This document shows positions 2,106 through 17,362 of a DNA stretch of 64,000 bases, in pieces. The stretch lies in assembly GCA_004764695.1 (NCBI GenBank), contig SMSO01000005.1, positions 1 to 64,000 on the forward strand, given 5' to 3'. Positions within the stretch are counted from its first letter, which is position 1. The number at the start of each line of letters is the position of its first letter. This DNA comes from Schizochytrium sp. TIO01 (Eukaryota > Protista > Bigyra: Labyrinthulomycetes). Under the pieces are notes generated by a model, which made no database searches, was not told the origin of the DNA, and saw only the letters and a list, made by a program, of their open reading frames with translations. The position numbers and the translations under genes are program-made.

Positions 2106-5100
2106 TTATTCAAAAATATAAGGGCCTAGACATCCCAATGCTTCACTAAAGGCAACATTTGCAGCTTCCAGCAAATCAAGCTCTACTTTCTGCGCAGCAA
2201 GGTAGTCCTCTTTTGAACTCAGCTCATTAGAGCTGTTAACAGGCCAAGTTTGTGTAAGAAGACTACGCTTCACTGCAAACGGCAGAGAAAGTGCATCGTT
2301 TACAACATGTATACAACGCAGCTCACAAGATATCTGTTCAATCGTTTTTCTTCTTGTCTTTGCAGAATAAATACTTTCATTCAATTCGAGCTCCTCGTAC
2401 ATTTCATCCGCTCTCCAGAATATACTAATATCAGTAAAACCCAAATGACATCAACTCCGTTCGTCAGTTAACAGTTCACGTCATTAAAAGGCACCCACAG
2501 TATTGACAGTACAGTTGCATTTATTTTCTGATGTTATCGTGCTCTCTGTTGGATCCACTCCAATCAAACAAACAATTCCACAACAAATTTGCAATAGTGC
2601 TAAAAAAAACATTGGTAAAACAACACACTAGACGCCCCACAACGCAACCAACCAACTAAGCCGCATGCACAAACCAGTTCACGAGCTATTGCTAAGACAA
2701 CTTACTTGAGTGATGTCAGCGACCGGTTCTCTTTCAGCGCCGCAACCAATGCCTTGGCGCCCTCGTCGCCGATATAGATGCAACTAAGACTGTCGATTTG
2801 ATTGAATGATGGCAAGCAATACATTACACGTTACATATTAGAATAGATGCACGCATGCATGCATGGACGTGAGTGATCTAGGTTGGCTTTCAGCATTTAT
2901 CTTTGTTGTGTTGTCATTTTGCTCTTTGCTCCATGGATGTATACTCACTCAAACAGACAACTTATTCATCCATCCATCAAACGACTGATTGCCATAAACT
3001 TGCAGAACAACACCGACCAAAATAACAACCAACGAAGCAAGCATCATGTACAAACAAGCCCATGAGCTGTGGTGTTGCTAAGACAACTTACTCAAGTGAT
3101 GTCAGCGACCGGTTCTCTTTCAGTGCCGCAGCCACCGCCTTGATGCCCTCCTCGCCAATATTGCTGTGATAAAGACTGTCGATTTGATTCAATGATGGCA
3201 AGCAATACGTTACACATGATACATTACATTAGGTGCATGCATGTACGTGAGTGATCTAGGTTAGCTTTCAGGATTTCACCTTTGTTGTGTTGTCATCTTG
3301 CTGTACGTTCGATGGATGCATGCTCAGTCAAATAGACAACTTATCCATCCATCAAACAAACAACCGATTGCCATAAACGTGCAAAACAACACCGACCCAT
3401 CCACCAACCAACTAAGCCGCATGCACAAACCAGTTCACGAGCTATTGCTAAGACAACTTACTTGAGTGATGTCAGCGACCGGTTCTCTTTCAGCGCTGCA
3501 GCCACTGCCTTGGCGCCATCTTCGCCGATATCGTTGTTTTGAAGACTGTCGATTTGATTGAATGATGGCAACCAATACATTACACGTTACATATTCAATA
3601 GATGCACGCATGCATGCATGGACGTGAGTGATCTAGGTTGGCTTTTAGGATTTCATTTTTGTTATGTTGTCATTTTGCTCTTTGTTCGATGGATGTATAC
3701 TCACTCAAACAGACAACCCATCCATCAAACAAACAACCGATTGCCATAAACGTGCAAAACAACACCGACCAAAATAACAACCAACCAACCAAGCATCATG
3801 TACAAACAAGTCCATGAGGTGCGATGTTGCTAAAATAACTTATTCAAGTGATGTCAGCGACCGGTTCTCTTTCAGCGCTGCAGCCACTTCCTTGGCCCCC
3901 TCTGAGCCGATATTGTTTTTTCTAAGACTGTCGATTTGATTCAATGATGGCAAGCAATACATTACATTGCAATGCAATAGATGCACGCATGCATGAATGA
4001 ACGTGAGTGATCTAGGTTGGCTTCCAGGATTTCATCTTTGTTGTGTTGTCATTTTGCTCTTTGTTCGATGGATGTATACCTCGTCAAACAAATAACTTAT
4101 CCATCCATCAAACAAACAACCGATTGCATAAACTTGCAAAACAACACCGACCAAAATAACACATCAACAAAGCAAGCATCATGTACAAACAAGTCCATGA
4201 GCTGTGGTGTTGCTAAGACAACTTACGCAAGTGACTCCAGGGACCGATTCTCTTTCAATGCCGCAGCCAATGCCTTAGCGCACTCTAAGCCGATCTGGTT
4301 GCCCCCAAGACTGTCGATTTGATTGAATGATAGCAAGCAGTACAATACAGTGCATCCGATGCATGCATGCATGGACGTGAGTAATCTAGGTTGGCTTTCA
4401 GGATTTCATCTTTGTTGTGTTGTCATCTTGCTGTACGTTCGATGGATGCATGTTCAGTCAAATAGACAACTTATCCATCCATCAAACAAACAACCGATTG
4501 CCATAAACTTGCAAAACAACACCGACCCATCCACCAAACAACAAAGCAAGCATCCTGTACAAACAAGTCCATGAGCTGCGATGTTGCTTAGACAACTTAC
4601 TTGAGTGATGTCAGCGACCGGTTCTCTTTCAGTGCCACAGCCACTGCCTTGGCGCCATCTTCGCCGATATCGTTGTCTTGAAGACTGTCGATTTGATTCA
4701 ATGATGGTAAGCAATACATTACACATGATACATTACATTAGGTGCATGCATGGACGTGAGTGATCTAGGTTGGCTTTCAGGATTTCATCTTTGTTGTGTT
4801 GTCATTTTGATGTACGTTCGATCGATGCATACTCAGTCAAACAGACAACTTATCCATCCATCAAACAAACAACCGATTGCCATAAACGTGCAAAACAACA
4901 CCGACCAAAATAACAACCAACCAACCAAGCATCATGTGCAAACAAGTCCATGAGGTGTGGTGTTGCTAAAACAACTTACTCAAGTGATGTCAGCGACCGG
5001 TTCTCTTTCAGCGCTGCAGCAACTTCCTTGGCGCCATCTTCGCCGATATTGTTGTTAGAAAGACTATCAATTTGATTCAATGATGGAAAGCATTTTATTA

Positions 5101-14700: not shown

Positions 14701-17362
14701 TTTCGCTGATGTGGTGCAGCTTGCCAAAAAAGTCTCGGACTTACGCGCGGACCGAGGCAGGGTCAGAGGAAACTCCCTGCAGACTGGGATTGCCTTGCTT
14801 GAGGAATTCGTTCGACCGGCGATTCAGGGCTACTTTGGCCAAGTGAAGTTGCGACAGGTTTTCGCTGACATCAAGAACTCCAAAGAGAGTCTTGACGTGC
14901 TACAAGGCCAGATTCGTGCAAGCACCGCCAATGGCTTACCCAGCCTCATCGAAAAGCGGAACACCGAACGGAGACACCTGTATTCACTTTTGCAGGTTGT
15001 GTACCCATGGGTTCGCGCCAACCTTTGCGAAAGTGATGAGAGTGCAATGCGAGAATTCAAAGTGAGAGTCAAAAGTTTGGTAAACGATCTAAAGATCAAC
15101 CTTGCACCAGTCGGTGAAGAGACCAGCACAGATGACTTCAAACACTGCCACGAACTCGCTATTCAGGCTGCCCAATTCGTGGAAGGGTACAAGAGGAGTG
15201 GAGAAGGCCAACTCGACAACATTGGTGAACGAAGCCAACAAGCTGTAAAACGCGTCATCTCTCGATTGTCTGAGCTCGAACTTGGTGATGGATTATGGGT
15301 TGCTCTGAGAACACCTGAGCAGGCCATGAAGCTAGAACCGGAGTTGTCTGAACTCGCTAGTGCTCTTAAGGAAGAGATCGAAGCTCTACAAGGAGATACA
15401 TTTCGTGCCCAATTGTCCAAAATACTTTGCGTGATAAGTTCAACATTTGCTCGATTTGAAGGATACTCTGAAAGCACAGTGTTGAATGATGCAAGCAAGT
15501 GCACACCAACAGAGCTCTCTAATCTGTATGACTATGCAGTACTGGGTTTGAAAGAACCTTCTGTCTCAGATGTCGAAGCATTATACCAGAAACTCGACAA
15601 GTCAAGGAAAGCCACAGAAAGATTAAAAATCGCCGAAGCAGAACTAGTGGCTGAGGACCTGGATGAGGAAGATCAAGCATATTTTAGAAATCGAATGAAG
15701 AAGCAAGAGCTCGTTCTCTCTCAAGGCAACCCTATCGAACTTAGCAAAGCCTTTCGTCATAAGCTTGCTGAAACTCTGCAACACGCGCAGGAACATTATC
15801 CAGAGTTACTGCAAGATAGAGCTTGGCTGGAAAGGCTTCACGTAAGTGCAGAGGGTGTTCTTGAAGTAGCATGTTCTGACCTTTGGTTGACGAATGTCAC
15901 AGTTTCGGACTTCAAGCCTGTCGACGAACCCCTTGCTTCCAGAGGTGGCAAGAGAGTACAAAAGGTTCTTGACAACTTTGGTAAAACTATGGTTCTCAAA
16001 GAGTTTCAGCTTGGACATTCAAGTCAATCCAAAACCTTCTACAGACAAGTTGCCAATCTGGGCAAAGTGGTGTCTCAGCATGTGATACGTATCAATGGTG
16101 CTTTTGTTGACTTGGCACATGGAGTACCGCGTGGCTGTATTGTAATGCCTTTCTACGAGCAAGGTGACCTTGCCAAGTGGATTGATAGTCATCCTAACGA
16201 AGGCAAAGCAGCACGCGACCGACTTGCTGTGGGCCTGCTCATCGGCGTGGCGGATTTGCATACCCACGGCATTGTGCATTGTGACATCAAACCAGAAAAC
16301 ATTTTCCTCACAAGCAACGGGACACCATTGATCGGCGACTTTGACGGCATCAAGAATGCAGACTACACTACAACTTACACATCACTTCAGGCAACGCCAC
16401 GGTACGTTGCCCCCGAGTTGCAGAATGGGCCTGTAGATAGGTTTGAAACAGCGATGGACATGTACTCTGTGGGCATCAGCTTAAAGGAGCTGTATCCTAC
16501 TGAGCGAACCGCTGCAATGCAGAAACTTATCGATGCTCTTACAGCAGCAGACCCTGGCCAGCGTCCAACCGCTCGCCAAGCACTCCAACATGAAGCTTTT
16601 GGAGCTCCTAAGATCCCTGTCAAGATATGTCTAGTATGCATGGAGGAGCATCTGCTTTCCAAGGGCACGAGCTGCGAGGAGGGAGACTTCCTTTGCAGAT
16701 ACTGTATCGAATCTTCAGTAGAAGCGGCGGCACGGCCACTTGCTAACGTAAGAGTAGATGCTGATGGAACGATGGCGTGCATGAAACCTGAATGTAGTGG
16801 AAGGATATCAGGTCAAGAAATCACCCGTCTTGCACCAACTGCTTTGAATCACCTATTGTTGATTGCGAAGATGAAGGCAGAAAATGAAGCAGCAGTTTGG
16901 GCGGAGAAGGAGATCCAAAGGCGCATAGCACAAGTTTTACGTTCTGATGAACAGAATCGCGACGCACGGCTTCATTTACTTCATATTCAAGAGAAGATCT
17001 TGAGCACATGTTGTCCGAACTGTAAGGGATATGTACACGATTTTGACGGTTGCTGTGCTGTAGAGTGTGGTAATGAGGCTTGTGGTCATCACTTCTGCGC
17101 TTGGTGTCTTGGCTACAGTTCTCAGGATGAAGATGTTTGTCATGATCATGTGAGAACCTGTTCAAGAAGACTTGGGGAAGATCCATTTTTTGCTGATTCT
17201 TTTGAGCAGGTTCGTGAGGCATGGCAGTTGCTGCGCGCTGAACGTCTGCGTGAGTACTGGAATGCAAAAATTCAGGATGGAAATCTTCGACTTGTTCTGA
17301 AAGAGTTATTGTCGCCTTTGCTAACACCAGATATTGTTGGCGCAAACTTCAGATTGGAATAG
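11728..17362 (+). CDS. Spliced 9-exon gene B: 6 LRRs, helical region, Ser/Thr protein kinase, RING and Rcat/RING2-like (RBR-type) domains, ~1147 aa
   Basis: Exons: 11728-11780 (MTLAKRIKDIREDTTKI, then GTAAGT), 11958-12044 (87 nt), 12380-12463, 12799-12882, 13225-13308, 13643-13726, 14071-14154 (84 nt each, LxxNNIxxEGAKAVAKxL), 14323-14517, 14674-17362. All introns are phase 2 GT-AG and the join is in frame with the 907-aa ORF. Total 3444 nt. Kinase motifs: VLKEF, HCDIKPEN, GDFDG, APE, DMYSVG. RING-like: CLVC...C...CRYC...CMKPEC. Rcat-like: CPNC...FDGCCAVEC...CGHHFCAWCL. Confidence 0.9.
11950..14120 (+). repeat. Tandem array B: 6 LRR exons at 418-428 bp spacing with 5 near-identical introns
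   Basis: Recurring cag|tctt...gagggcgcaaaggccgtcgcaaag...|gtacgtttgtggaatcatccac. Intron length differs mainly at a (GCA)n(GAA)n tract. Confidence 0.97.

Follow-up and report, generated by a model that had tools for sequence, protein, structure and literature searches.

Tandem repeats flanking a 5S rRNA gene in Schizochytrium sp. TIO01 as probable exon arrays of two divergent, diversified receptor-like LRR genes

The tandem elements of Aurantiochytrium limacinum known as LORE-TEARS were published as spacers without similarity to GenBank entries, and they were proposed to take part in maintaining chromosome ends (bioRxiv 10.1101/2023.06.15.545109). Group 5 is placed between two 5S genes and reaches 20.4 copies of a unit whose median length is 430 bp; group 0, placed between a 5S gene and 18S, reaches 20.6 copies, with a median unit length of 385 bp (bioRxiv 10.1101/2023.06.15.545109). 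We analysed the first 64 kb of contig 4 (SMSO01000005.1, positions 1 to 64,000; hereafter the window) of the 64.07-Mb, 37-contig assembly GCA_004764695.1 of Schizochytrium sp. TIO01, where two tandem arrays, A and B, flank a 5S rRNA gene. We put at roughly three in four the probability that these repeats are the exon–intron recognition-domain arrays of two divergent receptor-like leucine-rich repeat (LRR) genes, here gene A and gene B, diversified for the recognition of variable ligands.

Several described systems share part of this design. In the LRR-ROCO and NB-ARC-TPR genes of Ectocarpus, each fixed-length repeat occupies one frame-neutral exon, exons are shuffled and repeat number varies; the concave-face residues are positively selected and the LRR exon measures 72 nt (24 amino acids, plant-specific type) (PMC3341825; PMC11378527). 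The genes described here, also from a stramenopile, likewise have one repeat per frame-neutral exon, a varying repeat number and exons that move between positions. However, their exons measure 84 nt and encode LRRs of the ribonuclease inhibitor (RI) type, and in place of a ROC-COR GTPase they have either a kinase with an RBR-like module as output or no output domain. Also unlike in Ectocarpus, the arrays are regular tandem exon–intron units, homogenised genome-wide, beside rDNA and 5S and mostly near contig ends. In Podospora anserina, the repeats of the HNWD genes (het-d/het-e) evolve in concert within and between loci, with about four interaction-surface positions per repeat diversifying (PMC1805685; PMC2873952). 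Concerted evolution, varying repeat number and few hypervariable positions per repeat recur in genes A and B, but the HNWD repeats are of WD40 type, lie in one intronless stretch attached to a NACHT NTPase, and have no subtelomeric rDNA context.

The LRRs of ribonuclease inhibitor and of animal NLRs are of RI type, with 28–29 residues, and belong to cytosolic proteins whose exons correspond to whole repeats. Those exons hold two repeats (171 nt), and the genes are single-copy or form small families that are not known to be homogenised genome-wide. The genes of the window resemble them in repeat type and in having exons that are whole repeats, with one repeat per exon here. The var and VSG genes exist in dozens of chromosome-end copies, subject to ectopic recombination and patchwise conversion, and encode parasite surface antigens for immune evasion, unlike the intracellular-type LRR proteins of a free-living osmotroph considered here. 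New here are the RI-type 84-nt cassette that together with its intron forms the tandem unit, its homogenisation across dozens of loci, its interleaving with rDNA and 5S, the kinase–RBR output, and the fact that such elements had been published as spacers.

Tandem Repeats Finder (TRF) placed array A at 2689–9632 (period 378, 18.7 copies, 81% matches) and array B at 11953–14119 (period 419, 5.1 copies, 92% matches). Array A resolves into 19 minus-strand units at 2706–9481, each made of an AG acceptor, an 84-nt exon, a donor and an intron of 261–302 nt; in both arrays, a unit of 378–430 bp consists of one 84-nt exon, encoding one 28-residue RI-type LRR, and an intron. The A exons read as 1 base, 27 codons and 2 bases, and all 19 are free of stops. 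The pattern LxxLxLxxNxIgxxGaxxLaxaL of the 28–29-residue RI type fits all 25 LRR exons of the window, as well as 214 A and 53 B exons elsewhere. Pfam searches, run exon by exon, matched LRR_6 (PF13516) at 15.9–22.8 bits, below the curated cut-off of 23.4, with a single exon covering only profile positions 10–24; E-values per exon ranged from 8.5e-5 to 0.013 for A and from 2.3e-4 to 0.012 for B. All introns of genes A and B are in phase 2, so that the gain, loss, skipping or exchange of a unit leaves the reading frame intact. A search of the window outside arrays A and B found no further LRR cassettes.

An earlier note on this sequence had divided both arrays into units of AG, 84-nt exon and GT, described all 25 LRR exons as stop-free, phase 2 and encoding one RI-like LRR each, and placed in-phase ATG and terminal exons around both arrays, with the two genes diverging from an interval of about 1.8 kb. 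Frame, pattern and coordinates (Table 1) bear out this gene plan, while the unit itself holds in general, with two departures: the first LRR exon of gene B has 87 nt, as a result of a 12-nt duplication and a 9-nt loss that leave the frame intact, and one A unit (3927–3844) carries an AT donor. The remaining 18 of the 19 donors of array A are GTAAGT, and the unit at 6946–6863 has an AAG acceptor. Gene A encodes an LRR-only product without a signal peptide, which is apparently cytosolic. In ten paralogues of its terminal exon the frame was open in every case, the acceptor AG was kept in nine, and the stop lay at nearly the same position in eight, the other two having a 1-nt deletion just before it.

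Table 1. Coordinates of genes A and B and of features between and within them (window positions)
Feature	Position	Strand	Description
Gene A exon 1	9829-9893	-	ATG at 9893; 65 nt = 21 codons + 2 bases; GTAAGT donor
Gene A LRR exons, first ten (start positions)	9481, 9104, 8758, 8411, 8035, 7690, 7314, 6946, 6575, 6197	-	84 nt each
Gene A LRR exons, last nine (start positions)	5819, 5441, 5063, 4684, 4310, 3927, 3545, 3175, 2789	-	84 nt each
Gene A terminal exon	2106-2262	-	1 base + 51 codons + TAA; TAG acceptor; in phase with the LRR exons
(CAAG)31 perfect microsatellite	9692-9816		Within first intron of gene A (TRF)
Interval between the two ATGs	9894-11727		1834 nt; shared by divergent genes A and B
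5S rRNA gene	10359-10477	+	Rfam RF00001, 96.5 bits, E 1e-19; between start codons of genes A and B
Gene B exon 1	11728-11780	+	ATG at 11728; 53 nt = 17 codons + 2 bases; GTAAGT donor
Gene B LRR array, 6 exons	11958-14154	+	GTACGT donors; final one GTAAGT
Gene B LRR exon 1	11958-12044	+	87 nt
Gene B LRR exons 2-3	12380-12463, 12799-12882	+	84 nt each
Gene B LRR exons 4-6	13225-13308, 13643-13726, 14071-14154	+	84 nt each
Gene B linker exon	14323-14517	+	195 nt; open in phase; RNA-like joints at both sides
Gene B last exon	14674-17362	+	Helical region, protein kinase, RBR-like module; TAG stop; 896 amino acids, about 2.7 kb
Protein kinase domain	15962-16495	+	PF00069, 101.3 bits vs cut-off 31.7, E 8.1e-29
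RBR-type E3-like module	16628-17161	+	RING1, long helix, Rcat-like zinc finger

Each gene is a member of a family that counts some 40–50 or more copies beside rDNA and 5S. Across the assembly we counted no fewer than 396 A units and 360 B units; the gene A terminal region is present in at least 40 copies (86–99% identity) and the kinase exon in at least 51 (59–97% amino acid identity), 43 of these 51 being without a stop and eight having stops or truncations. All 13 A-type and all seven B-type loci that were fetched share the conserved module formed by a 5S gene, exon 1, the array and the terminal part. Exon 1 of gene A and the region upstream of it are 78–98% conserved in 12 other loci, where a 5S gene also lies beside exon 1, and exon 1 of gene B is 87–91% conserved in six others. 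Array size varies from 12 to 20 units for A and from 5 to 19 for B. The head-to-head B(−)/5S/A(+) layout is repeated at at least five other loci (contigs 5, 8, 12, 23 and 34). The two genes may function as a pair, with A as the supposed sensor and B as the effector, as the earlier note proposed. The majority of copies are found no farther than about 100 kb from a contig end, beside rDNA and 5S, and some are internal in very long contigs; judging from coordinates, other A arrays are located between a 5S gene and 18S.

We also observed sets of short LRR_6 open frames, spaced about 360–700 bp apart, away from contig ends, in contig 4 (246517–256354), contig 30 (995360–1001477 and 8210605–8213514) and contig 33 (2482178–2486992). 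Exon-cassette LRR genes are thus not confined to the rDNA-linked arrays.

To compare units, we aligned 214 distinct A units from 13 arrays and 67 B units. None of the 214 A exons contains a stop in the LRR frame, whereas 143 and 214 of them, respectively, do in the other two frames; their 84 columns show neither gaps nor insertions, whereas the A introns carry many indels, and the donor is GTAAGT in 212 of 214 units. Stops and frameshifts accumulating in exons at the intron rate, which the earlier note had named, together with a lack of spliced transcripts, as an argument against coding function, were therefore absent from the A exons. The note had also asked whether other arrays carry in-frame 84-nt exons; this is so for A, but not throughout for B, where 13 of the 67 exons have frame-breaking lengths (see below).

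Some five codons in each repeat hold most of the variation, in line with the hypervariability that had been proposed for both genes. In the A units, nucleotide diversity (pi) is about 0.05 in scaffold codons, below that of the introns (0.114), and reaches 0.5–0.7 at all three bases of codons 2, 3, 5 and 8 and of the split junction codon; the most variable positions hold 16–18 different residues. Leu27 is invariant, with a pi of 0.61 at its third base. From base frequencies, 64.7 stops would be expected at the four hypervariable A codons and none was seen, and 10.5 would be expected at the hypervariable B codons versus one seen, figures that overstate independence because the units are related by descent. 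In the B units, pi is 0.02 in the introns, 0.3–0.7 at 20-odd exon bases, with 0.5–0.7 at the hypervariable ones, and 0–0.04 at the remaining exon bases, and 50 of 53 exons are unique. Distances between B introns are 0.007–0.035 within arrays and 0.012–0.033 between them, as against 0.33–0.82 at hypervariable positions. Since introns of B units from different loci are no less similar than those of one array, the arrays are homogenised across loci, with the variable codons escaping. The kinase exons beside B arrays have synonymous divergences (dS) of 0.04–0.35 and ratios of nonsynonymous to synonymous substitution (dN/dS) of 0.29–0.40.

A recent duplicate of array A in contig 13 differs from it at 8.1% of hypervariable bases, as against 1.3% of scaffold bases, 1.5% of intron bases and 0.85% of the flanks. 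The changes are patchy: exon 9 is identical to exon 10 in one copy and to exon 13 in the other, and exon 4 differs at 14 bases, with no difference in the 60 nt of intron on either side. These duplicates demonstrate the conversion of exon-sized patches from other units.

Contigs from three RNA-like runs and from one DNA-like run (X19) were aligned to 13600–17400. In the RNA-like runs, depth in the exon bin (13600–13726) was 987, 18908 and 18960 versus 20–30, 266–519 and 2286–3424 in introns, an excess of about 40-, 50- and 6-fold, respectively, whereas X19 was flat (13343 in the exon bin versus 21430 and 11723 in intron bins). Only the RNA-like runs contained the LRR–LRR joint 13726|14071, in which nine differing letters replace the variable start of the next exon, a joint that leads from 13726 backwards to where an LRR exon starts, and the linker joints 14154|14323 and 14517|14674, exactly at the predicted sites. 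The differing letters in these contigs sit at hypervariable positions. The spliced junctions foreseen for this locus were thus found for B-type exons and were absent from the DNA-like run; B-type exons are spliced as predicted in the RNA-like data. Contigs of all three RNA-like runs also contained a joint from 14388 to 14673 with five other letters in between, which suggests either a paralogue whose linker exon is shorter or the use of another donor.

A paralogue derived from a transcript has the same plan. P0157 (MMETSP0960 transcript product, complete open reading frame of 1240 amino acids) combines 12 RI-type LRRs (LRR_6, E 1.4e-33, 112.7 bits, as scored on the cluster representative P0011) with a kinase and the same C-terminal module. 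Its residues 328–1240 are 99% identical to one open frame in contig 13 (1153892–1156630), and eight of its LRRs map to eight consecutive exons of the form AG|84 nt|GTAAGT, in the same phase, within the 1.5 kb upstream of that frame. A transcript from another member of this family in the same organism therefore validates the exon plan.

A protein kinase followed by an RBR-type E3-like module closes gene B, in agreement with its earlier description as an LRR–kinase–E3 gene; the kinase was recovered as a PF00069 match and the module by profile and fold. The kinase, of Ser/Thr type, has the HCDIKPEN, DFD and APE motifs and an atypical glycine-rich loop. The C-terminal module had no Pfam match at E up to 1, and a single-sequence phmmer search against PDB gave only weak matches. 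Its Cys/His columns are almost invariant in 44 homologues, and a profile of these matched RNF216 at E 1.6e-7 (RING1 aligned), followed by parkin, Cullin-9 and ARIH2. An AlphaFold2 (AF2) model of the module (270 amino acids) reached a predicted local distance difference test score (pLDDT) of 92.9, and Foldseek on this model placed RNF216 first at 9.7e-5, followed by HHARI, HOIL-1L and parkin. A conserved CPxC...GC...C..C...FCxWC pattern aligns weakly to the Rcat of RNF216 and Cullin-9. The module resembles RNF216 (TRIAD3) and other RBR ligases in its RING1 with an extra Cys pair and apparently in its Rcat-like finger with Gly-Cys at the catalytic position. It differs from them in being fused behind a kinase and in its middle part, where Pfam matched no IBR and a helix of about 50 residues (98–150 of 270) takes its place. 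Homologues of this RING1–helix–Rcat-like module (16550–17359, +) number 1540 at E ≤0.001 and often terminate proteins of great length (up to 3211 amino acids), Phytophthora proteins among them.

The helical region that precedes the kinase (about 420–430 amino acids) was modelled by AF2 with a pLDDT of 77.7; Foldseek found nothing at E ≤0.001, returning only generic helical bundles. We considered the NLR/STAND and ROCO classes for gene B and rejected both: the Pfam scan of the 896-amino-acid exon contained no NACHT or NB-ARC domain and no ROC-COR GTPase tandem, only kinase families. The genes are therefore neither NLRs nor ROCOs. Relatives with the helical–kinase–RBR-like arrangement (P0004, P0013, P0015, P0023 and P0031) carry ankyrin repeats (Hondaea), LRRs plus ankyrin repeats, or WD40 repeats, and include a dinoflagellate protein (Durusdinium). 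With ankyrin or WD40 repeats replacing the LRRs in such relatives, the sensor end of the kinase–RBR chassis is interchangeable.

If genes A and B are diversified receptors, the variable residues would line the concave sheet and the adjacent loop of each LRR domain, where they would bind ligands. Variation would come from ectopic recombination and gene conversion involving the more than 750 in-phase cassettes, diversifying selection would keep what is supplied, and gene B would convert binding into phosphorylation and ubiquitin signalling. The families would, in this way, serve the recognition of non-self or of otherwise variable ligands.

Several observations weigh against such a reading. The location of the variable residues on the concave face draws on general knowledge of LRRs, not on a model of these proteins, and ligand binding and an immune, antiviral or anti-parasite role of the families are suppositions. 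The splicing of gene A exons is deduced from signatures of selection and not from RNA. For gene B, the RNA status of the three runs is a guess, and the contigs with joints represent paralogues or alleles at ≥90% likeness that are not provably the window copy. To the shared descent of the units, which inflates the stop-codon statistics, must be added that 13 of the 67 B exons, all from other loci, have frame-breaking lengths of 82, 83 or 85 nt; a single array of contig 7 accounts for 11 of these. Lastly, the A unit at 3844–3927 (−) has an ATAAGT donor (GT to AT), the sole ATAAGT among the 214 A units; this exon is probably skipped in splicing, which would keep the frame.

Recognition of variable ligands might also serve an end other than defence, namely allorecognition among the species' own cells or the inhibition or regulation of nucleases and other enzymes, which we regard as rather unlikely. 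Gene A is, like ribonuclease inhibitor, an LRR-only protein of RI type and apparently cytosolic, and fungi use concerted evolution with a small number of variable positions for allorecognition (PMC1805685). This alternative departs from the preferred reading in the ligand only, and our data are neutral between the two.

We consider it unlikely that genes A and B are real but belong to a family in large part decaying, with a hypervariability that would be due in part to a loosening of constraint or to noise from the assembly of a collapsed repeat. Signs of decay do exist. The contig 7 array with most of the frame-breaking exons (L001/L002, 1069275–1076903) has at least 18 B-type units, with indels confined to hypervariable segments; its 82-, 83- and 85-nt exons could be either decayed copies (or products of mutagenesis) or long-read consensus errors in a repeat. 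Stops or truncations affect eight of 51 kinase exons, and one A unit has lost its GT donor. Moreover, the first 600 nt of the window contain neither a telomere repeat nor 18S, and the contig begins 2.1 kb past the gene A stop, so that the chromosome end is incompletely assembled here. However, variation at the hypervariable codons is far above the intron level and yet stops are avoided, kinase exons have a dN/dS of 0.3–0.4 and are intact in 43 of 51 cases, and variable letters also appear in the RNA-like contigs. The frame-breaking exons are, in addition, concentrated in a single array, whose adjacent kinase exon is intact.

The contrast between B introns that are 98–99% identical genome-wide and some 20 exon bases near saturation, with 50 of 53 exons unique, could be the work of a dedicated targeted process, such as hypermutation or a templated conversion directed at exons, which might be somatic or clonal. 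The duplicated exon 4, with its 14 differences and unchanged flanking 60 nt of intron, and the confinement of indels to variable segments would also suit such a process. Nonetheless, we hold it to be improbable: exon 9 of the same pair is an exact copy of another exon in the same array, which points to ordinary gene conversion, fungal NLR repeats show the same pattern without special machinery (PMC1805685), and we found neither a candidate enzyme nor evidence of variation between cells. A related and similarly doubtful idea is that the more than 750 LRR cassettes near contig ends are a donor pool, from which exon patches would be copied into expressed genes by targeted conversion, possibly in a lineage-specific manner. 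If true, a free-living stramenopile with persistent mirusviruses would possess a generator of anticipatory repertoires comparable to those of VLR or VSG.

B units resemble LORE-TEARS group 5, and A units group 0, in the length of the unit (419–430 and 385 bp here, respectively), in the range of copy numbers and in where they stand with respect to 5S and 18S. The earlier note had raised a possible link to LORE-TEARS, and it is sustained in these three respects; matched by published description and not by sequence, arrays A and B seem to correspond to groups 0 and 5, respectively. Whereas the authors of the preprint read these groups as spacers, we read them as arrays of coding exons, and the literature collection searched contained no paper linking LORE-TEARS or the subtelomeres of A. 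limacinum to LRR genes. Only groups 0 and 5 come under this re-reading, for an AT-rich, group 1-like repeat with a unit of about 410 bp (about 1.2 units, about 1 kb downstream of 28S, at about 2800–3300 of two loci, L023 and L025) showed no LRR motif or long open frame in the 500 nt seen. That the repeats are only non-coding spacers with a structural role at chromosome ends and fortuitously open 84-nt segments is scarcely credible, since, even if the preprint describes no GenBank similarity and an end-maintenance role (bioRxiv 10.1101/2023.06.15.545109) and some groups, such as that of the 410-bp repeat without a coding signature, may be non-coding, the A exons have no in-frame stop or indel in 214 cases beside introns with indels, splice sites are conserved, Leu27 varies only synonymously, exon–exon joints occur in RNA-like contigs and a transcript-derived paralogue has the same exon plan. 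The spacer reading is thus contradicted as a sole explanation, although a structural role may be a second function.

Should the assignment of genes A and B as diversified receptors be correct, at least two of the five published LORE-TEARS groups would become coding arrays of large receptor-like families, and a heterotrophic marine protist that hosts episomal and integrated mirusviruses would possess about 100 cytosolic LRR genes with diversified binding faces. The one-repeat-per-exon design of the candidate receptors of brown algae would reach another class of stramenopiles, with another LRR type and a kinase–RBR output. The arrays also offer a clean case for study, as concerted evolution and diversification go on side by side in them and the introns may be the substrate for recombination. 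The assignment further raises the questions of whether protists have diversifying innate receptors and why these would be located beside rDNA at chromosome ends.

Concerning the surroundings of the arrays, Rfam gave no match inside arrays A or B, and a structured-RNA test of the introns yielded z-scores of −1.07 and +0.86. The window contains three plus-strand 5S genes (10359–10477, 20633–20751 and 43466–43584) with identical Rfam scores, the first of which, an RNA polymerase III gene, sits in the shared promoter interval of two divergent RNA polymerase II genes. A (CT)n run lies at 11615–11637, just upstream of the gene B start codon. Farther along, a full 18S–5.8S–28S unit occupies 30873–36397, with minus-strand clusters of tRNA genes on both sides (27066–30120 and 38252–39359); unlike the chromosome end described as typical in the preprint (bioRxiv 10.1101/2023.06.15.545109), this rDNA copy has no tandem repeat adjoining it.

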